From: Bugula neritina | Lineage: Eukaryota; Animalia; Bryozoa | Assembly: GCA_964035545.1 (NCBI GenBank) | Contig: OZ037773.1 | Span: forward strand, 5,609,751-5,673,750 | Direction of reading: 5' to 3' | Length of the DNA stretch: 64,000 nucleotides | Shown here: positions 2,581 through 17,335 of the stretch, one piece after another | Layout: each line of letters starts with the position of its first letter | Position numbering within the stretch: position 1 is the stretch's first letter | Notes under the pieces: generated by a model | Seen by the model: only the letters and a program-made list of their open reading frames with translations | Told to the model about the DNA's origin: nothing | Databases searched by the model: none | Program-made: the position numbers and the translations under genes

Positions 2581-5500
2581 GCTCGATTCAGCTGAGTGAG
2601 CACATTGGCAGCTATGAAGCCCTGGAGTATAATCGTAATACACTCCGGGAGAGACATTTTAGGACTAGGAGATCAGTATACGATAAAGTTATTATCCAGA
2701 ATATAACAGCCTTCAACAGGTAATGTGAGCTTATCACTCGTCCATCATTTCATTAGAAAGTAGCTAAAAGCAGCACCGAGTTGGTGGTCACTGGGTTCGT
2801 TGGTTTTGGAGGTCTCCGGTTTTACTTTCTCACAAATCAAGTCTTGTTGTATTAGCAAGCAGCTATAATACATCAATGTGCTCCTTATATCCTGAATGTA
2901 TGATAATGCAGGGAGTTCAGGCTACGGCTCCACCCCGACACCGAGACCTTCCATCCTAAGGCTACGGTTCTCTTCAATGGAACTGAGGCTCCTTTAGACA
3001 TGTCCCATCTCTTCCGAGGCACTGTAGAAGGTAACATCTAAGGCTAAAGTATGGATGCGTATATGTATTTATAGTGCTTGGAGTCTAGACTACAGAGTTA
3101 GTACTTAGTGTCTAAATCCATCATCTGACTTATAAATCATCCAGTAACAAAGGACAGTGAGATAGGCTGCACTTAGGGCAGTAAATCCTGGGAACTTTTG
3201 GTAGTTGTCACCTATTTAAACTGATACTAGTAGTACTTATACTAGTAGCTCCACTGTTACTAGTAGGTTGACTGTTACTAATACTACTGTTACTACTGCT
3301 AGTAGTACTGATACTAGTAACACTGTTACCAGTACTGCTGCTACTAGTAGTACTGTTAGTAGCCGTACTGTTGCTACTAGTAGAGGTATAACTTGAGCAT
3401 ACACCAATAGATAGTACTTGAGCTAGTGTAGGAATATGCACTGTATGCCTTACTCCAACCTTAATTAGCAAATTACGTTAACACTGGTGCCTGAACATTG
3501 TAACCATGTTATTATTTAAAATCACTCTAACAATAATTGGTTATGGGCGTTGCTCTGTTCAGCGTTGTATTGCCCATCTATTGATAGTTGGTTGATGAAC
3601 CTGGTGGTTAGTCATAAAATTATATCGTAATATGGGTTAGTCACGATAAGCATTAGGAAAGCACTGGTTACTACTTGACAACTGCTATGTCATAGCATAA
3701 TGATGGTTACGATATCATTTCCCAACAATTATATCTATTAATGCAGATCGCACCATTATTATAGGACACTATCATTAGAATAGCTATCAATATAGCCGTA
3801 TTATCATAATTAAACTTCCTATTTTTTATTTCGCGACTGTAGTGGCCTAATTAGGTCTCCCAACTAACATGGCTTCCATAGATCTTCCTGTTTCAGCTCG
3901 TTCACTGCTAGACTGGCTTTCTGAGTGAATAAATCTCGCCATCAGCCCAAATCTTTCCCCGTAATATACAACATGGCATGCCAAGTTTCTTGTTCAGAAA
4001 TCACCGCACCAGTTAATCAAATTTCATGATATAGTTATGTTTTGTATAAATCTACTGGCCGAGGCGTTTCAACTCAACCCAGTGCCCCTCTGTTGGCCAA
4101 ATTACTAAAATGTAATTTTGTGAAGTTTTGTAGCAAATAAAAGTCATCGGTGAACACAGAGATTGAATTGTAGCCCAAAGTTCATGATTAACTAGCCCCG
4201 GTTCTTTATCTACTCCTGTGATGCGTTGTTGTAGACCACCCTGGTAGCAGAGTAATAGGTGCCATCACAGATGGGGTATTCCACGGGAGAATTATCCTCT
4301 CTCCCTCTGACGTCTACTATGTAGAGAAAAAGGAGCACTACAAGGATAACAAAGATCTCTACGATAACGAGATGGCTCACTCAGTTATCTACCATGATAG
4401 CAGTGTAGACGTCGAGAAGTTCTACAGGTTACTCAAAGCTTATATTGTTACAGTGTGTCATTGTAGTACAAACAATGTGATGGAACGGCTTTGCTTTGCC
4501 CTAGTTGCTTTAGTAGTTACACTATCTGCCAGTATCTGTCTCTATCTGCCAGTGTGTGTGTCACAGATCTATCTGTCCGTGTGTCACAGGTATATCTGCC
4601 AGTGTGTGTCACAGGTATATCTGCCAGTGTGTGTCACAGGTATATCTGCCAGTGTGTATCACAGGTATATCTGCCAGTATCTGTCTCTATCTGCCAGTGT
4701 GTATCACAGGTATATCTGTCCGTGTGTGTCACAGGTATATCTGTCCGTGTGTGCCACAGGTATATCTGTCCGTGTGTGTCACAGTTCTATCTGTCAGTGT
4801 GTGTCACAGATATATCTGCCAGTGTGTGTCACAGGTATATCTGTCCGTGTGTGTCACAGGTATATCTGTCCATGTGTGTCACAGGTATATCTGTCCGTGT
4901 GTGTCACAGGTATATCTGTCAGTGTGTGTCACAGGTATATCTGTCCGTGTGTGTCACAGGTATATCTGCCAGTGTGCCTACCTGCCAGTGTGTGTCACAG
5001 GTATATCTGTCAGTGTCGCAGGCCCAGACTTCTAACTAACATGCCACTCAGCAAATTATTAACAGTAAAAAGTGAGGGTTTAAATACCAAACTCTAGTAG
5101 AAAATCATTCAAACCAATTCCATGTTCTTTAAAAGGGAATAATTTATTACAAGCTAGTTGTAGCAAGCTATTTCCATGTTTCCTAAAACCTGTTTCTTTA
5201 ATTAGTAGTTTAGAAAACAACTTTTCCTCTCCAATTCAGCATTATTTTGCCAGAAATTTCGAGCTCATTTGCTTACTTGCAGTACTATATTGATTTTTAT
5301 TACAAATTTTGAGTTCCAGTGCCCAGTTCGAGCAATTACCAAGTAGTTAAAGACTTTTCTTCAAAGCGATAAAAGTTTGGGTAGTTGGGCAAGGCCCATT
5401 TCCTCCATGGCTGATATAGGAATCTCATTCATCATTCTGTTAAACATTATATTGTTAGGAATTTATTCATAAATGTGATGATTGCACCCAAGGGACTACT

Positions 5501-8500
5501 AGTAATACATGCACTAGTAGCTTCACTTGTGTTGATCAACACATGTCTAAGCAATTAACTGCATTCTTTAATGGAACACATGGTCAGTTCATAGACCCCC
5601 ACAGGCAGCTTCTCCTAATATCCCAGTTTTAGACTTCATAGCGGAATATGCCCCTAGACACACTTTACCCGATCATAGGTGTTACAGCAAATGTCAGCCA
5701 TTTTTACAAATGTCCGAGCTTCCTGTACGACATTACGGTATGTAAAGATCAAACACTATTTGATTCAAAAAAGTTGCATCGGGCTCCTTTTGGACAGAAC
5801 GACGTTTGCGGCAACTCATTGGATATAAATGTTCAATGAGGTGTCATAGATCTTACCCAATAGTGGGCGTGCGGTGAGAACTTCAGCCCAATAAAAATGG
5901 CTGACATTTTACGTTACGGCCTACGATACGGCAAAGTGTGTTTTTAAGGAGATATTGTGAAAGTGAGGGACAACTTCTGACACTCCTTTCACAGATCACT
6001 GACATGTATTAAGTGGTTGTTCAGGGTTGGTGTCTGACTGTTTGCAGGGAGAAACGAGAGGCCGAAGGTCATCAGTCATGTGGAAACAGCAAGGCTAGCG
6101 TCTACCAGTGGATGGACAAAGTGAAGCGTTCTGTAGTACAGGAGGTGAGTTACTGGTGTTTCTGTTCCCTGGAGTTGGCCAACCAAATAATAACATGAAT
6201 TGGAGAACCTTATGAGTCCTTCTCGGGGCCGGCTATTTTAGTACCAAGAATTATGGTTGAAAAATTCAGAATGGATTGAAATATTTTGAAAAATTGAGGT
6301 GTAATTCATATTAAAATATTTTTTTCTTGATGCTAAAATGAGTATATTGGCCCAAGATTGCCCTAGGAAAACCAAAATCAGCTGATTTTTAAAAAAAAGC
6401 TCTTGTAGGGAACATACCTAATTTTCTATATGTCCTCATAAATATTGAGCAAAATATGAATTGCCAACAAATAATGAGTTAATTTTAGGTGGTACCATAA
6501 TTATGATCGCCTGAGTGAAACGTGACATGGCGTAGGACGTGGCTGTTTATATATCACCTAGTGACTGCATTTTATATCCAACTTACTATGAGTTAGTAAT
6601 ATATTGGTTATTGTAGCCGTCTTTTACCCACACAGCCGGTGACAACCCGTACTTGCGGATGAAGAGAGAGAACAACTTCTACTCACATGCTAGAACGAAG
6701 CGAGCCACTAATTTCAATACTATATGTAACCTCTTTCTCCAGGGGGACCCCCAGCTTTGGGCCTACTTTGATGGATTGTTTAGCGGAGAGGTAGTATAAT
6801 ACAGGGCCCCCTATTTTTCCTAAACAGTTCAGGTCTCATGCTATGACCGCTATGCTAGTGTTGACCAACTAATAGCTGTAGGGTGTGAATTTCAACCAAC
6901 GCTACCAATTTTGTAAAGTCGCTATAATTTTTTTTACTGTTTTCATATGTGAATGTGTTTAACTTCTTGTTTCTACTACAACATTTCCATCTTCACTACA
7001 GCTTTAACGTCTTCACTGCAGCTTTAACATCTTCACTACAGCTTCAACATCTTCACTACAGCTTCAACATCTTCACTACAGCTTCAACATCTCCACTACA
7101 GCTTCAACATCTTCACTACAGCTTCAACATCTCCACTACAGCTTTAACATCTTCACTACAGCTTTAACGTCATTATGTTAAACAACACAAGTTCCTGGAA
7201 TGTGATTAAAAATAGTTTCAATCATAGAAATTTAAGTGCTCAATAAACTAATGCTAAAACTGTGGGCAGCTTACAAGCAATGTTTCTGCCTTCTCAAAAT
7301 GTCAGTCTTTTGTTTTGAGGTAATCCGTAGACCAGGAAGTTGACTTGTAATCTAGTCTGAAATAATGCCTTACATTCTTTCAGCTCACCATACTTAGCAT
7401 TCTTACACCAGGAGTAAATCCTATCGTATGTGCTGGTTGTGTGCCCCTGAAGTGTTTAGTTTTGCATGGCCTGTTGAGATTCATTCACCTCATTGATCTC
7501 TTACTTGTTAGGCCACCGATGAACAGATACGTGACGAGATCAGTGCCCTGTTTCATCAGCACGTCACAAGCGTTCACGACATCTACTTCCGCACTTCATT
7601 CCGCCAATACGACTCTTCAACTTACTATAGAAACTACGGCTTCAGAGTAGACAGGGTACAGGTGAGATTTTGTGAGATTATAAGAGATTATACTGTAATT
7701 ATACTGTAAATAATTAAAATCTCTTCTGCTACATTGTATAGTCTTGCATCATCAGACAGTGTGGGGTCACTGAATGGAGACAATGTACAAATCTACCAAC
7801 TGTATATACATACATACTTACCTACCAACTGTATATACATACATACTTACCTACCAACTGTATATACATACATACTTACCTATCAACTGTATATACATAC
7901 ATACTTACCTACCAACTGTATATACATACATACTTACCTACCAACTGTATATACATACATACTTACCTACCAACTGTATATACATACATACTTACCTACC
8001 AACTGTATATACATACTTACTTACCTACCAACTGTATATACATACTTACTTACCTACCAACTGTATATACATACATACTTACCTACCAACTGTATATACA
8101 TACATACTTACCTACCAACTGTATATACATACATACTTACCTACCAACTGTATATACATACATACCTACCAACTGTATATACATACATACTTACTTACCT
8201 ACCAACTGTATATACATACTTACCTACCAACTGTATATACATACATACTTATATACAAATTGTATATACATGTATACTCAGGCCTATACTTGCATGCCTA
8301 CCAACTCCCCAGTCTTATATTCACACTCAAACATCTTATATTTAACTAATTATGTTATGTTTTATTGTTTTACAACATGCAGTACCAACATTAAGGTGGG
8401 CCTCTCCTCTTTTTGCTATGAACTTTGCTTAGAGCTGTTAATGTTACGGTTGGCATCTTGATTTCTTTTAATTTGCTGTTATAATGTTTTATTTACCATC

Positions 8501-11500
8501 AATACCCTAGCTCTTGTTATAGAGTTATCCTCTCAATATGATTGTTTATACTGGAATATTGCTTAAAAAAAGTAGTTTCACGCTTTGTTATGAATAGAAT
8601 ATGTTGTAAGTGCCTGAGCTCCTTGTAGATTAGCAAGAAATGTGACTGCAGTACGGGCGAGTGCCAAACCAACCCCTTTTGCAGCACCAACATTGATGCC
8701 AGCAACCTGCTAAATCTCCACTCGGATAACAACCACAATGGCTACTGTCTTGCCTACCTCTTTACCTACAGAGACTTTGATGGCGGTACTCTGGGGCTAG
8801 CCTGGGTTGCCGAACCCACTAGTAAGTGCATATAGTCTGAGTAGGTGATCCGCATACGCTATTGTCTCTTTGTCTGTAGTTGGAATTTTGAAATTTAAAC
8901 TGTTTCCCGCTCCTGTTAAATCAGTGAGTAAAGCCTACATCTATACATACGGTACTCATTTCAAACTGTGCTTCTGCTGTTACATTTTTATTTGTTCAAA
9001 AGCTTAGCCAATGTTGATTGAAGTGTAAAGATCCCGTATTTTGTTCACATTTATTCAAAACCAAATGTTTTAGTTTCTAAGTATGACTGGAAGCACAGTT
9101 TATGGTCCGTAGGTATTAACAAGGTAGTGTAATAACGAGCCAATTTCTGATACGTTTCCAAACATGGTTTCAGTGAGTCACCAAGTAATATACTTGGGAA
9201 TAAACAAGCTAATATCTAATTGGTTAAATAGTATACGAATGTGTAAATGCCAAATATTGGGTTTTTGCTGCAACCATGTTTTAGCTAGGTGGGAGAATAC
9301 CAAAGTTCCCCATAACTTTTCTCTGGGGTTTGAAATATTAATTATAGCTGTTCAACTGGCAGTCACCATTTTCTGGTTTTGAAGTTGTGTCCACCTTAAG
9401 TTTGTAGCTATGGTTATATAATTCAATATTGATTGACGTTTTCAGGCAGCCTATTGGTGTGTGAATTATAATATGTTGTACTGTGTTGACCTACATTTCA
9501 GAGGTGGGCGGAGTTTGCTCAACATACACTTCAGTTCGAGACGGGGACATCACTGGTACTCGTAGCCTAAATACCGGTATCATAACGCTTAACAATTACC
9601 GAAAGCGGGTCCCGCCCCGCGTGTCCTACCTCACATTTGCTCATGAAATTGGCCATAATTTTGGTGCTAAAGTGAGTCAAGCTGCACGCTGGCCGATGAT
9701 TACGGCCTTCTGTACGTCTGCTCTGCTCCAGCTAGCTCCAGTAGCCATGATTCTTGCATGCTCTGATTCGCTAGGTTAGGGGGGGGTGCTGAAACCACAT
9801 TGTTATGTTAGCTATCAGTCTAATGGCTCTCTGCCATGCTATGTCATGTCAGTGCTGAAACCTGTCTCAATTGAAACAACTGCTATGATTGGCTTGCACT
9901 TCTGCTGGTATTCAGCGCTAATCACATTCAGATTTGTAGGTCTGCAGATTTGCATTAACTTGCAGTATAGTTAGCACCCTAAACCTGTAAGAGACCCTCT
10001 GATATCTTGGTGGTGGGTTGACACGGTTGACACTCGGGTTCAGTTTGTTGACCAGATTCTGGTCAAATTTAGATTTTCCGCAGTGTCTCAGGAAGGTAAT
10101 TCATTTCACCAGTTGTTTGTTTTACTACATCTTGGCTGTCATCCGTTTAGTATTGTTGTACCACACTGGACTATATGATGTTTATCATCAGTTTGGTATT
10201 GTGATGCCACGCTGGGCTATAAATAGATATCATCAGTTTAGTATTGTTGTACCACACGTAGTACTAGTGCCAGGAGTTGGCGGTTGATTATTTAATGTAG
10301 TCTGAAGTTGGAACTTTCTGGAAACTTTCGTTCAGGAAAGCAGCATGTGAGATGGTTTAGTGTTGTAAATTAGGTTAAATTGACTGAGTTCTGATTATAC
10401 CAGACGTACTGTTACACCGTCGTTAGTTCTAGGGCTATGACCTCACTTCAGCTAACGGCTCACCCCTACTAACTTCCTGCTTGATATATGTGTTTCCTGC
10501 TGTACCATTTCTGTAGATCAAGCAGGTGGAATCTGCAGTGAACAGGCTCTGTACGCTCAAACCGGCAACCGCCAGAGCCTCAACACTGGCATTGTAACGC
10601 TTCAAAATTTTCAGCGAAGAGTACCGCCTTCTGTGTCAGCCATAACCTTTGCTCACGAGTTGGGTCATAACTTTGGTGCTCAGGTAATAAGAGACGGGTG
10701 TGGCGCATTACCTGGCCCCACCTGTAAGTAGTACAAGACACCCAGCCTATTGACTGCTAAATACTTCCTGGATTTGTGAATAAGAAAAGTTGGACTACTT
10801 CTATTTTAGCAAGCACTTTATTTTCATGGCACACTGTTGAGTTAAAAAGTTTATCAATAGGCTGTGGTGTCTTCTCTCTCCATATTTTCACTAAATACCT
10901 CTGCTTTTATGTAACATGTTTGTTCATCCCACCTTTCAAAAGCAAGTCCAGCTATTCAGTTCATTTTTTAATAAAATAAGTTTGCATTAGTTTATAATAG
11001 TTTCAGTCACATCGATTTTACTTCAGTTGAAAAGTATTTGTAAATTTGTAATCAATAGTGTGACAATCAGGTGTCGGTGATTTGTCAAGTCATTTCTCTG
11101 GCACAAGTTATTACTTAAGATCAAGTTAAGTTATGACTTTACGTGTCAGAATTAAGTTAAATTTTAAATTTCAAATCATTTATATATTTTAAGTCAACTC
11201 ATTGAGAAGAGTAAGTTTAGTCATGTTGAAGAATTTCAAGTACTGAAGTCGTTAAGTAAGTGAGTCAATATGACTTGAAATCAGTTGTGCCAGATAAGTG
11301 CAGCATATCTAGTCTCTCTTCAAGCATGGCTCCTTGCATCCCACTGCTGCTATGAAAAGTCCCTAATACCCTGCAATATGCTCTGATTGCTCTAGCTCTG
11401 TCTCCATGCATGGTACACACCTGCTTGCATATATACTGTGCTAATGATTAAATGTTGCTGCAAATCTCAACTGATCATTAATGCATGTTGTGCTGTAATT

Positions 11501-14169
11501 CTTACAGAATCTCTAGTTACTTTGTTTCCTATCAGATATGATGTGTTTGTATTTTATCCATTTAGTATTTTTGACATTGTAGGTTGTCTTCTCAGTATTG
11601 CAATATAAAACTTTAAGGGCTCTTTCAATTTTCCTACTTGTAATGGTTTATTCTTGAATTTAGAAGTTTAATTTCAGGGTGATGCACTCAACCCCTCAAA
11701 CTTTGCATGGCCGTCAATGCGTTCAATAATAACCCTCTTTTCATCACAAAAAATTAGTTCTCGGTTTATTTTATGCTCAGTATTTTATTTTTTAACTTAT
11801 GGTTTTTTTCGTAATTCGTTTATTGACAGTGGAATATGAATATACCGGCTCTACTTTGTGAACTGTTTTATTGCTAAGCTTTTGTTTGAACTCTTAGGGG
11901 TGTACAACTTACATAACAGTTTAATTTATTTCCCTCAACCTAAATTTATACATGTGCGACTTTGAAAGAGCCCTTATTTTTAGAAGATTGTAATGTTTGA
12001 TACATATGTTATACCTGTCATCGCTACAGCAGCTACAATATTAACTGCAATACTATTTTTATTTATCATGCCACTCACTACAACCAATTCAGTATCAAAT
12101 ACACTATGAACAGTATTCTGCTTATCCACTACGTCATCTACAAAAATATTACATAATATACTGCCTAATATACTACATAATATACTATATAATATACTGC
12201 ATAATATACTGCATAATATACTATATAATATACTGCATAATATACTATATAATATACTGCATAGTATACTATATAATATACTGCATAATATACTATATAA
12301 TATACTGCATAGTATACTATATAATATACTGCATAGTATGCTATATAATATACTGCATAATATACTGCATAGTATACTATATAATATACTGCACAGTATA
12401 CTACATAATATGCTACATAATATACTATATAATATGCTACATAATATGCTACATAATATGCTACATGATTCACAGCACGATGAAGAAGGTATGGTAGACA
12501 GTTGCACGCCATTTACTGATAACGGTTCACCGAATGGTAACTTCATCATGTTTGCCAGTGCTACTACTGGCGCCAAGTCTAACAACGATGACTTTTCACC
12601 CTGCAGTCTTGACAGCATCGCCCTCGTCCTCCAGGCGGTTGTCAACGGCGACGGATCAAAGACCAACTGCTTCAAAGGCAAGCCATGCTATCTCTAGTGC
12701 AGTCTCCAGACCTCTTGGTGTAGGATGGTGGATAGTTTGAAACAGTCTTAGGTTTCTGTAAAGGAATAATTTAGAATGTTATAATATTGCATAGACATTT
12801 GACAATGTCTATTTCAAACCATCACGATCCGCAAATCCAAATTTACTGAATAATTAGGAAAAACCATAGAACATCAAGCAAAATTAAAAAGAACTTTGAT
12901 TATTTTGTTGTATTTGTTAATATTTCACTAGTTTAGGGCAAAACCCGAATACATTAGCAGCTAGATTAAGAAAATTCGCTAAAAACTAGAGATCTTGAGT
13001 GTGTACTAACTTAAGTAAAATGATCCATATGGAAACCTTCTTGCACGCACTTATAACAAATGACAAAGAGATGCCCACCTGTGTGTTACAGAGAATGGAG
13101 GGGCGTGGTGTGGCAATCAGATCATGGAGACAGACAGTGAAGGGCAAGAGCAGTGTGACTGTGGTTATAAGAAAGACTGCATTGACGGTGACCTTGATTG
13201 CTGCCGCTGCTGTTACGGACAATTTGAAGGCAATGATAACCCAAATGCTTGCACTCTAAAACCAAGTACGTTTCTACATCTCTCCCACATGATTGGTTGA
13301 TTAGTTAATAGGGATTGTGGGTAAATATCTGGAAACTTTAACTTTGGAGAATGTGGGATGAATATCAGGTTCTGGTAGATCTGGTATATGAAGCTCACTT
13401 TGTTATAGTAGGGGACTAGGAAATAAAGTTCAAGCTTTACTCTTCTATCAGTTTTACTGTAAATACTATTTATTCAGGTCGAAAAGCATGAGATTTTGTT
13501 GCAATGAAACAGCCTCACTATTTTGTCGAACAAAATTATCAATTCTCAATTATGAAAGCGTGAGGAGAGTAAAGAAAATTTATATATTTATTCTGGATAT
13601 GACTATAACTTAGCAATTTTATTATCGAAAAGAGTTTGAAATGGAATTGAAACAAATGAATTACATTGAAGTTTACAAGAACATCATTGTTGAGTTCTGG
13701 TGTGTTTAGACACCACGTGTGACCCTTCTCAAGGACCTTGCTGCAGTGCCAGCTGTGGTTATAAAGATGATTTGGTAATGTGCAGACCGCCAGGAGAGTG
13801 TACTCTGGCGGCTAATTGTACCGGCGGGTCACACACCTGCCCCGCCTCTCTCCCTGATGAGGATGAGAAACTGTGTAATGGTGATACTCAGATATGTAGG
13901 TCTGGGGTGAGTTTAAAGCAGAGCAGCAGTAGTAGTAGTAGTGGCAGTGGCAGTGCTATTAGTAGTGGCAGTGGTCGTGGCAGTGCTATTAGTAGTGGTA
14001 GTAGTAGTGGTAGTGGTCGTAGTGGTAGTAGTAATAGTAGTGGTAGTGATAGTAGTAGTGGTAGTAGTAGTAGTGGTAGTGGTCGTAGTGGTAGTAGTAG
14101 TGGTAGTGATAGTAGTAGTAGTAGTAGTAGTAGTCGTGGCAGTGCCATTAGTCGTGGTAGTAGTAGTAA

Positions 14170-14217
<48 letters not shown>

Positions 14218-17200
14218 TAAATAACCGTAGTTTTGCATGCATTTGCTGTCACCGTGTCATTCGCTCATTCTGCAGATGTGTAACGAGTCCATCTGTACTC
14301 TCATCCCCAACTCAAAAGGCGGAACATGGTTTGAGTGTGAGCCAGAGCCGGATGTTAATGACCCGACCATCCTCTGCTATGTCGCCTGCACGCCTGATAA
14401 TAAAACCTGCCACTCGTCTGCTCATGTTGGCAAATCAGATTTCCCTCCAGAGTTCAAGATTCTTCTCGACAATAAACATGGCGGAACTAAGATTAGCATG
14501 CCGGCCGGTAATAGCTCTGAAATTCCGTAAAACACGTTTAATTAGTTTCTTTAATTACGTTGTGTAATTGCACTGTGTTGCTGATATACATGGCATTTGA
14601 TTTACAATAAGAGCAAAGGAAGAGCAGACGTTGGTATTTTGTTTACTTCCTTTTCCTTTCTGCTCTCATTACCTACAATATACTCTGTTCAGGTCATATC
14701 TGTGACAAGGACAAGGGCTTCTGTGACCACTTCCAGAAGTGCCGACAGATAAACGCCCAAGGTCCACTGGCTCGTCTCAAGAACCTCTTATTTAGCGCCA
14801 CCACCCTCCAGCTGATCAAAGATTGGGTTACCGTAAGTTTGTCTCACGTCCCTGACTAGATATCTGCAGCGTTTACTTATTATGATGTCACTGTTGAACG
14901 TGTACGTCTTCTGCAGTAGACATCTTTAAGAAATTTTATTTATTACTTTCTAGCTCATCTCAGCTTTTGCTACATATTGTTTGTCATCGCTATGGTAACA
15001 AGCTGTGATGTCACTTCCCCTTACAGGTGTACTGGTGGGCTGTAGCTCTCTCCATACTGGGATTTATAGGGCTGATGGCCCTCTTTGTCAAGTGCTGCGC
15101 CGTTCATACTCCCAGCTCCAATCCAAAGAAGCCTCCAGCAAGAAAGCTCACTCAAACGCTGACGTTGAGACGTAGGCAGCAGGCTCACAACGCTGCCAAT
15201 AGAGACCACGCTACGCACGTATGTTCTAGAATATTTCCCATATAGTATATCCTCAGTGTTCTATGCATTTTCTAAACTTTGAAAATACTTTTCTAAAAAT
15301 TTAGGCTTCTGTTTTTTTCTTGGAATGCGAATGTGTTTTTCTTAAGTGAAGTTTTGCTATGATAATGAACTGCATGTGCGTCTGTGTCTACACTCAGCCA
15401 TACTAGGCCAGTTGGCACGAGTCTACGTGTGCAGTGATACCAATATGATTTCTGTAAGACTTGCTTCTGGCTATACAACTCTTATGAGCTTCTCTCTTAG
15501 CGTTTCTACAGAAGGTTTTAACCACTTTCTAAAACTTGTGCTGCTCTATTTCTGATACTTTATCTGCACATATAATATGGAGATGCACTGATGATATTTT
15601 CCACTTTTCTCTTTTAGGAGCCGCTATCTGCTAACACTTTCATTTAGGTATTAAATCATTTAAGTTTTCTGTATTATGGATCCCAGCCTTATTATAACAG
15701 GCAGCAACTCTAAGGCTATAATCTAACATTCTAGGTAGTCGGGTTGAGAACTTCTGGTTCTAATGCTAACTTCCTGAAGCTTGAGCTGCCCATATACTTC
15801 TATTTGGGCAGCTTTTGGATTGATAGATTCATCCGTTGCAGATAATTAATTAGGGAGACGATAAAAGCAGCACTGGGTTTGGGGTGACTGAGTACAGTAT
15901 TTGTATACGTATCGTTGTCCAAACTTGAGAGCCCTTACCACTGCACTCGGGGACCACCAACTCAGTGCTGCTTCTAGCTATTATCCATCAGTTGCTAGTT
16001 TAGACTCTGCTTCCTAACAAAGTTTTGATATTAGTAGGGGTGGCGGCTGCCCCTTCCTTCTAACAGGTGTCAGTCAGTAGTAGTGCCTTTCTGTTGGGGA
16101 TTTGTTTTATGCTTTGATGTTGGTTTGTGCCACAGATCTTTGAAGAAATTTTCTTTCAAGTTTAAATTATTTCATAGTTGGACTCCATTCCTTTTTTTTG
16201 CACTTATACACTATTCTTACAGGCCTTGAAATTTCATTTCTTGGTCAATTCTATCAATTCATTAAGAAAAGTTCTTTAAAAGCCCACTAACCACTTTTAA
16301 GCACAGAGTTTTCTTTTATACTTTTTATAGTCTAAAAATAAAAATGTAATTACTTTCAATGAAAGTTTAAATTTAGCTTTTCTGTATTTTATTTTGACTT
16401 TTTTGGGATTAGGAGTTGCTACCCCTAGAAGTAAAGCGTCCCGAGGTAACGCCTGGGTGATAAAACTTACTGTGAGCTTTCAGTACCGTGTGTTAACCTC
16501 TTCCTATGTACTGAATGTCTTCTTTCGTATTTCTATCCTTCATCTTGTGTATAATTTCTGTGGCTCAGCAGCTTTGTGGGAATATTTTTGATGAATAATG
16601 TATAATTTCTAGTAGAAAATTTTAACACTATAGACTGCCTTACACTTATAACAAATCGTTTGTTAATGGCATTGTCTCCCCTTGTGTGTCATTTCTTCTC
16701 ATGGGAAATAACGTTATTATAAATTTGTCTGTAAATTTCTTTCTGCAAGCCTATTAACAGTACAGTATTCGTACTTTGATTAGTAATTGTCTTTTTACCA
16801 AGTCTTACCCTAGTTTTCACCATTGAACTAATTTTCAATAACTCCATTAATTTTATTAATAGTATTTAGTTATGCTATGCTTTGAAGAAGTGGCTTATTT
16901 ATAATAAATATTTCAATATTCTCCATTGAAAAGTCTTCTCTGAAAATATTCTCACACCTTCTACCTTGTGACTGAACAGTTGAACTATTTTTGTTTATAG
17001 AAAGTATTGGATATGATATTTTTAAATGTAGATATTTACTGGTGCTTATTTAACTCTTGTTCTCTGTGCTGTTAATTTACTCCGTTCACATTTTGATGGG
17101 TTTTGTCTGACCAGAGTCTGAAATGTTTCAGATATATCCTCCTCCTGCAACATCCAACAGACCCCTTACCGAGGCGTCTAATCACCCACCCGCATACAGC

Positions 17201-17335
17201 GATATTATAACTGAGGAACCCCCACGCTCTAGTAGAAGTGCGCAATCTAACCAACCAAGGCCACAGAGCAGAGAGCAGCGACAGCAGCAGTTTGAGATGC
17301 AGCAGCAAAAGTTAAAAAGAGGCAATCGTCGCTGA
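2581..17335 (+). CDS. ADAM10: ADAM10/Kuzbanian disintegrin-metalloprotease (5' exon missing). Exons: 2581-2719, 2912-3030, 4235-4427, 6048-6144, 6617-6790, 7512-7661, 8629-8821, [9502-9671 OR 10517-10683], 12476-12677, 13092-13265, 13710-13906, 14276-14507, 14693-14832, 15027-15218, 17132-17335
   Basis: The phase-consistent spliced translation gives ADAM10 hallmarks. Prodomain [13 protein letters not shown]...HSVIYHD, cysteine switch SCG, furin site [27 protein letters not shown], SLNTGIxT, TFAHExGHNFGAxHD, Met-turn [19 protein letters not shown]. Disintegrin [18 protein letters not shown], Cys-rich [39 protein letters not shown], tail [14 protein letters not shown]. Confidence 0.95.
4523..5016. 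repeat. 25-bp minisatellite (tatatctgccagtgtgtgtcacagg)
   Basis: Direct tandem copies; the source of the spurious Cys/Val-rich ORFs. Confidence 0.95.
5646..5956. mobile_element. MITE-like element with ~60-bp imperfect inverted ends
   Basis: acacacttt...aaatgtcagccattttta near 5660-5706 is mirrored by taaaaatggctgacattt...aaagtgtgt near 5892-5941. Confidence 0.65.
6988..7168. repeat. 20-bp minisatellite (cttcactacagcttcaacat)
   Basis: About 9 tandem copies. Confidence 0.93.
7793..8270. repeat. 29-bp minisatellite (ctaccaactgtatatacatacatacttac)
   Basis: About 16 tandem copies. Confidence 0.95.
9502..9671 (+). CDS. ADAM10: ADAM10 catalytic exon, variant A (170 nt): [57 protein letters not shown]
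   Basis: Acceptor tttcag, donor gtgagt, phase 1 to 0, open frame, HEIGHNFG zinc motif. Confidence 0.93.
10517..10683 (+). CDS. ADAM10: ADAM10 catalytic exon, variant B (167 nt): [56 protein letters not shown]
   Basis: Acceptor ttctgtag with TACTAAC branch-point consensus at 10467-10473, donor gtaata, phase 1 to 0, open frame, HELGHNFG motif. It is absent from the ORF track. Confidence 0.92.
12152..12466. repeat. 12-bp minisatellite (ataatatactry)
   Basis: About 26 copies ending just upstream of the acceptor at 12475. Confidence 0.93.
13927..14219. repeat. (AGT)n-based degenerate microsatellite filling most of an ADAM10 intron
   Basis: Lies between the donor at 13907 and the acceptor at 14275. 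Confidence 0.95.
15865..15974. mobile_element. Short palindromic MITE family copy (AAGCAGCAC..GTGACTGAGT...ACTC.G..ACC..GTGCTGCTT)
   Basis: Self-complementary ends; homologous copies at ~2768-2812 (partial), 24526-24649, 28453-28575 and 33981-34122. Confidence 0.7.

Follow-up and report, generated by a model that had tools for sequence, protein, structure and literature searches.

A stretch of 64,000 nucleotides (nt) from the Bugula neritina genome (contig OZ037773.1, positions 5,609,751 to 5,673,750 of the forward strand; hereafter the window) contains an ADAM10/Kuzbanian-like gene with two adjacent, homologous copies of the exon that carries the first part of its zinc site. At the level of assembled contigs, the two copies, termed exon A and exon B, are expressed as mutually exclusive exons. 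Very probably, the pair arose by an ancient tandem exon duplication within the ADAM10 gene, with one of the two used per mRNA and the reading frame backing that exclusivity. The features on which this account depends are listed below in window positions; L numbers are our handles for loci, and joints are written as exon end>exon start.

2600 to 17335 (approximate limits), + strand: ADAM10/Kuzbanian-like gene, from collinear blastx, exon-like open stretches and Pfam
8629 to 8821, + strand: upstream constitutive exon, ending ..GLAWVAEPT plus one base, A, in phase 1; donor GTAAGT; Reprolysin_2 match; RNA contigs end or join at 8821
8822 to 9501, + strand: intron, 680 nt, GT..AG, joint 8821>9502
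9502 to 9671, + strand: exon A, 170 nt, acceptor ..TTTCAG, donor GTGAGT, joints 8821>9502 and 9671>12476; orthologues on L014, L007, L011 and L012
9672 to 10516, + strand: intron between A and B, 845 nt; no A>B joint seen, indel-polymorphic, fold z -0.37
10517 to 10683, + strand: exon B, 167 nt, acceptor ..TCTGTAG, donor GTAATA, joints 8821>10517 and 10683>12476; orthologues on L014, L036 and L009
10595 to 10597, + strand: stop TAA, reached when A and B are both included
10684 to 12475, + strand: intron, 1792 nt, GT..AG, including an AT-rich tandem repeat (about 12045-12470)
12476 to 12677, + strand: downstream constitutive exon, starting HDEEG, with the third zinc His, the Met-turn region and a Reprolysin_2 match
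12481 to 12483, + strand: stop TGA, reached when A and B are both skipped (ACA CGA TGA)

The initial annotation of this DNA, made from the letters alone, had described two intact paralogous exons between the shared boundaries at 8821 and 12476, and all of its coordinates, phases, splice sites and motifs check out. Both exons are entered in phase 1 and left in phase 0. Read with the base carried over from the upstream exon, A starts K-VGGVCS and B starts N-QAGGICS, and each then runs from its Cys (GGVC in A, GGIC in B) through SLNTGI to the first part of the zinc site. The motifs GGxC, SLNTGI and HExGHNFG are present in both copies, and the shared exon that follows supplies the third His (HD). 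The two peptides are 59% identical (E 6e-23), and a sensitive tblastn search (E<=50) found no third copy of the exon within the gene. The lengths of both exons are 2 mod 3, and the frame is kept by A alone or by B alone. The prediction that inclusion of both copies would run into a TAA, that skipping both would give an immediate TGA, and that only A or B alone would yield protein was confirmed, and at least six coding exons lie 3' of these two stops.

Fourteen sequencing runs were found to contain part of the window; 13 of them contain approximately 6-10% of its words, the share expected of RNA data that cover exons only. The Logan contigs of four runs (X1, X3, X4 and X10), one per study, were compared with positions 8600-12700. 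All four junctions expected from separate use of A and B were found in these RNA-derived contigs. The two joints into the downstream exon, 9671>12476 and 10683>12476, were seen in four of four runs, the second being reported as 10680>12473 with the cut at +3. Entry into A (8821>9502) was seen in X1, X4 and X10, with a loose end reading into exon A in X3, and entry into B (8821>10517) was seen in X3 and X10. All four joint types carry GT..AG ends. Record 9 of X10 consists of 29 nt of the upstream exon, the whole of A and 19 nt of the downstream exon, and record 10 is the same with B in its place; the two are typical bubble arms of a de Bruijn graph. Neither the 9671>10517 joint of double inclusion nor the 8821>12476 joint of double skipping was listed in the contigs of the four runs, contigs being a form of data that drops rare variants.

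Exon B contigs show no mismatches to the window, and thus do not come from the paralogous gene described below. Contig word depths for A and B in the four runs were 2215/1008, 145/64, 105/25 and 33/14, which places A at roughly two to four times B in every run, with the depths themselves being rough. Introns were at little or no depth in X3, X4 and X10; exon-only coverage with GT..AG joints shows these three to be cDNA data. X1 is a 'metagenomic RNA-Seq' library and also has intron contigs, which come from pre-mRNA or DNA. Several percent of intron positions, and a few exon positions, differ between the contigs and the window, and the contigs therefore come from individuals other than that of the assembly.

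Such variation extends to larger differences in and around the introns. In the intron between A and B, one X1 contig is missing 180 nt and 81 nt and has many small indels besides (9779-9867, 10051-10230, 10274-10354); the missing 180-nt stretch sits in a local tandem duplication (approximately 10150-10270). In the intron before A, the X1 and X3 contigs have 85 other letters in place of 93 window nt (8996-9090), a structural variant between individuals. The downstream exon has a GC donor (AAG|GCAAGC) and not a GT donor, and the contigs of all four runs depart from the window right after 12677, resuming in the next exon near 13092.

Comparison of the two exons with each other, and with those of related species, indicates that the pair is old. 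At the DNA level, A and B share only about 59% identity; they differ at 36 of 54 third codon positions and encode 19 of the 33 identical residues by different codons, with a dN of 0.34 and saturated dS. In the search for relatives, exon A was compared with 1.84 billion representatives and the open stretch of exon B was used in a word-indexed search, which returned two fragments only, one of which (P0004) led to L014. This is a 3.4-kb metagenome scaffold from another species, on which the A-type exon occupies 551-720 (170 nt) and has a GTGAGT donor, the B-type exon occupies 2066-2238 (173 nt) and has a GTAATT donor, and the downstream exon follows at 2788-2991; order, phases and donor types agree with the window. 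A third species, represented by L012 and L036 from one JGI sample, has the upstream exon, an A-type exon, a B-type exon and the downstream exon; L012:1395-1495 overlaps L036:1-101 end to end (101 nt, 98% identity), and the two mismatches suggest haplotypes or strains. Two more species (L007 and L011) show the upstream exon followed by an A-type exon, after which the contigs end, and L009 holds a B-type exon alone.

Between the window and L014, exon A has a dN of 0.09 (protein identity 84%), exon B a dN of 0.28 (69%) and the constitutive downstream exon a dN of 0.31 (66%), with third positions saturated in all three. By this measure both exons are under purifying selection, A much more tightly than its surroundings and B about as tightly as the rest of the domain. 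A maximum likelihood tree of the exon peptides separated the A-type exons (92/87), the B-type exons (86/75) and the paralogue's exon, each as a clade, and joined all three clades (90/91) to the exclusion of the ADAM10 of other phyla. The alignment behind this tree has only 56 columns and the support is moderate. No second copy of the exon was found in Helobdella (a leech), Ridgeia (a tubeworm) or the annotated spiralian genome GCA_032854445.2, nor in 34 metagenome ADAM10 loci, many of them cDNA-like; the metagenome scan yielded 35 such loci, of which L046 (match length typical of vertebrate ADAM10) was excluded, as were the vertebrate-type fragments among the representatives matched by exon A. 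Since other lineages have single copies and the relatives have the pair, the duplication is lineage-specific and older than the split of at least three species. An old duplication under purifying selection had been suggested from the window alone, with a conserved pair across related genomes and dN/dS as the check, and the saturated dS, the dN values above and the retention of the pair in two other species all bear this out. At the Helobdella robusta ADAM10 locus (L021:5967-6514), an additional intron interrupts the homologous single exon after ..TLCNYNSR, so that exon boundaries here vary among spiralians.

The identity of the gene follows from several lines of comparison. By blastx, the window is collinear from 4228 to 15182 with proteins named ADAM10 by their sources; the best full-length matches are from leech, tubeworm, molluscs and flatworm, at an identity of only 35-65%. 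Open stretches together with blastx reveal prodomain, catalytic, disintegrin and Cys-rich exons, a transmembrane (TM) segment and a Pro-rich tail that ends near 17332 according to the exon-like open stretches, such that prodomain, catalytic domain, disintegrin, Cys-rich region, TM segment and cytoplasmic tail occur in this order. Pfam placed Reprolysin_2/5 on the exon pieces 8629-8820, A, B and 12476-12676 and Disintegrin on the exon piece 13694-13900; the ADAM10_Cys-rich model gave no match at E<=0.01 on the single exon piece tested. Among solved structures in the PDB, the best relative of both exons is human ADAM10 (6BDZ/6BE6/8ESV), with 54 bits for A and 62 bits for B, compared to 23 and 28 bits respectively for ADAM17. 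The extended zinc motif HExxHxxGxxHD is complete with either exon, the HD being supplied at 12476. Judged by its sequence, the gene is a member of the ADAM10/Kuzbanian subfamily of M12B (adamalysin/reprolysin) membrane metalloproteases.

Long tandem repeats lie within the introns of this gene (4470-5036, 7710-8458 and 12045-12470), and they are open in all three frames, giving rise to long spurious open reading frames such as ..YNILHNILH... A Ser/Gly-rich low-complexity stretch (13900-14221), open in frame, is found directly 3' of the disintegrin exon 13694-13900.

A second ADAM10-like gene is present in the same genome (G000:C3:955534-955698; L003:1076-2031). It has the same exon boundaries and a single copy of the zinc-site exon, which shares approximately 51-55% protein identity with A and B and forms a third clade beside them; a fragment from a relative (P0020) groups with the paralogue's exon. 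The initial annotation had envisaged a switch in the protease achieved without gene duplication. This holds insofar as A and B sit in one gene, but the genome also contains this separate, single-copy ADAM10-like paralogue.

Our preferred account is of a cassette exchanged by splicing. The cassette of 56-57 residues would comprise the loop after the edge strand, the SLNTGI strand, a further loop and the first two-thirds of the active-site helix (HExxHxxG), with the third zinc His and the Met-turn supplied by the shared next exon. Each mRNA would carry A or B, and the frame would disrupt transcripts that include both or neither. The shift in frame can be read directly from the exon lengths, and with the early stops placed far upstream of the last junction, the affected transcripts would presumably be removed by nonsense-mediated decay (NMD). 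Because the disulfide Cys, the catalytic Glu and both His are kept in A and in B, both isoforms are predicted to be active proteases. A is the more abundant and far more constrained of the two, and the evolutionary rate of B is close to that of the remainder of the catalytic domain.

Two familiar means of keeping tandem exons apart were considered and rejected. Steric hindrance does not apply to an intron of 845 nt between A and B, as opposed to one under approximately 60 nt, and incompatibility between U2 and U12 splice sites is likewise inapplicable, as the donors GTAAGT, GTGAGT and GTAATA are all U2-type GT and the acceptors are pyrimidine-rich ..AG.

A less simple possibility is that competing intronic RNA base-pairing of the docking site/selector type imposes the exclusivity, the candidate region being 9773-10475. 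Docking and selector mechanisms are common for tandem mutually exclusive exons, and weak inverted repeats do exist here, for example 9961-9976 with 12198-12213 and 12354-12369 (81%). We nevertheless regard this mechanism as unlikely. The weak repeats mostly fall in the AT-rich tandem repeat, and a scan for inverted repeats found no strong ones. Comparison with six relatives' contigs (L014, L013, L007, L011, L012 and L009, by blastn and by alignments around A) revealed no conserved intronic islands beyond the splice sites, the intron between A and B folds no better than its shuffles (z -0.37), and the candidate region is indel-polymorphic between individuals, as seen in the X1 contig with its two missing stretches. 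As no other mechanism of exclusivity is supported, the frame rule is the simplest enforcer.

Doubt might also be cast on exon B itself. If one exon, most likely B, were a decaying or noise-level duplicate, the gene would effectively make one protein, and both the lower contig depth of B in four of four runs and its threefold faster evolution compared to A (dN 0.28 vs 0.09) point in this direction. Yet B is joined to both of its neighbours in RNA-derived contigs at approximately 20-30% of the combined depth, B-type exons with all catalytic residues are intact in four species and form a clade of their own, and the dN of B equals that of the adjacent constitutive exon, with synonymous sites saturated. 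We thus consider a decaying B highly improbable. An assembly artefact, whether from the collapse or expansion of haplotypes or from an erroneous join to the paralogue, has next to nothing in its favour; the genome does hold a paralogous ADAM10-like gene, but this is not specific evidence for an artefact. The degree of DNA divergence between A and B argues against it, as does the distinctness of the paralogue's exon from both. The idea is refuted by RNA contigs from other individuals, which join each exon to the same flanking exons, and by the contigs of two other species, which show the same A/B arrangement. Four points do weigh against the account of a spliced cassette as we have given it. 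The RNA evidence consists of assembled contigs rather than reads, such that forms with A and B together, or with neither, may occur at a low level, and the ratios of A to B are approximate. That the runs are RNA is a guess, although the exon-only coverage and GT..AG joints of X3, X4 and X10 show these to be cDNA. The relatives are known from metagenome or short-read contigs, and the placement of type-specific residues relies on alignment with human ADAM10 and ADAM17 and on fold topology.

To compare the two cassettes, five A-type and four B-type exons were aligned with the paralogue and three outgroups. The residues GG-C, SLNTG, T, N, P, S, T and AHE-GH-FG are invariant throughout. The residue before SLNTG is R in all A-type exons and K or Q elsewhere, and the strand is followed by TLNNYxK in A and by TL(Q/E)N(Y/F)Q(K/R) in B, with other residues in the outgroups. 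In the loop between the Cys and SLNTG, A-type exons have an aliphatic residue followed by (R/Q/S)(D/E)G, and B-type exons keep the ancestral aromatic residue but have lost the acidic-Gly motif of the outgroups and of human ADAM10 (..YSDGKKK). The cassette, as aligned, thus exchanges two loops, one directly after the edge strand and one after the next strand, together with that next strand and the zinc-site helix, and the consistent changes fall in the two loops.

The helix is not type-specific, HE(I/L)GH varying within both types. The initial annotation had placed the difference in specificity at the S1' positions, with L-T in A and I-T in B. This basis did not survive wider sampling; four residues ahead of the first His, the A-type exons have L, L, I, L and I and the B-type exons I, L, I and L, and the distinction is therefore not conserved. 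The substrate-binding edge strand, GTLGLA, is located in the shared upstream exon (8629 to 8821) and not in A or B, and by our own counting on the ADAM17 sequence it presumably corresponds to ADAM17 Thr347-Gly349. In ADAM17, Thr347, Leu348 and Gly349 hydrogen-bond inhibitors and substrates (PMC12491190). It is probable, though with low certainty, that the A and B isoforms differ in surface features around the cleft, namely extended subsites or contacts with regulators. A splicing switch of substrate or inhibitor specificity is plausible. A tentative extension, which we hold to be possible but doubtful, is that one gene would have two distinct repertoires of substrates or regulators, with A, for instance, a conserved 'housekeeping' Notch-type sheddase and B a faster-evolving form whose contacts at extended subsites or with partners are altered.

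The pair resembles known systems in most respects. Tandem mutually exclusive exons backed by frame and NMD are a known class, documented in human and Drosophila surveys and exemplified by PKM exons 9/10. The window pair is assigned to the mutually exclusive class because its exons are adjacent and homologous, of similar length and identical phase, and have alternative joints; as in the known class, inclusion of both or neither shifts the frame. What sets the window pair apart is that its cassette encodes the catalytic Glu of a cell-surface sheddase along with two of its zinc ligands. Tandem alternative exons are likewise found in the docking-site/selector systems of insects (Dscam1 exon 6, 14-3-3 zeta, srp), but, in contrast to these, no conserved intronic pairing elements were found at the window locus. 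With regard to the enzyme, human and other vertebrate ADAM10 (6BDZ, 6BE6, 8ESV) and Drosophila Kuzbanian share its GGxC, SLNTGI and HExGHNFG plus HD motifs and its collinear domain layout. Only a single copy of the exon is present in the ADAM10 genes of vertebrates, the leech and the tubeworm and in the others sampled, whereas the window gene has two alternative cassettes.

ADAM10 has been duplicated at the level of the gene in Drosophila (kuz/Kuzbanian-like) and zebrafish (adam10a/b), and in the split between ADAM10 and ADAM17. Gene-level duplication likewise gives two related catalytic domains that could divide substrates between them; the window gene differs in swapping only 56-57 residues, with the prodomain, the rest of the catalytic domain, the disintegrin and Cys-rich regions, the TM segment and the tail all shared. 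The mechanism of the exon pair is ordinary for splicing biology, and the enzyme and the exon class are each already well known. To our knowledge, no protease with an alternative active-site-helix cassette is known, and no description of mutually exclusive exons in ADAM10/kuzbanian or in a protease active site was found in the open-access full-text literature. As far as these searches show, this is the first protease with an alternatively encoded active-site-helix exon.

On a practical level, the pair is a trap for annotation, as gene models in this lineage will either miss A or B or run the two together as a frameshifted 'low quality' protein. Its wider interest lies in the enzyme. ADAM10 carries out the ligand-dependent S2 cleavage of Notch and serves as the main alpha-secretase, and what sets its choice of substrates is debated, the candidates including the catalytic cleft, the non-catalytic domains and tetraspanin partners. 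A 56-57-residue catalytic block that is swapped by splicing and kept across species, with the other domains identical, is a natural experiment on that block. If the two isoforms do have separate repertoires, splicing would do here what gene duplication (kuz/Kul, ADAM10/ADAM17) does elsewhere, and the gene would provide a natural cassette-swap experiment on the determinants of ADAM10 specificity.

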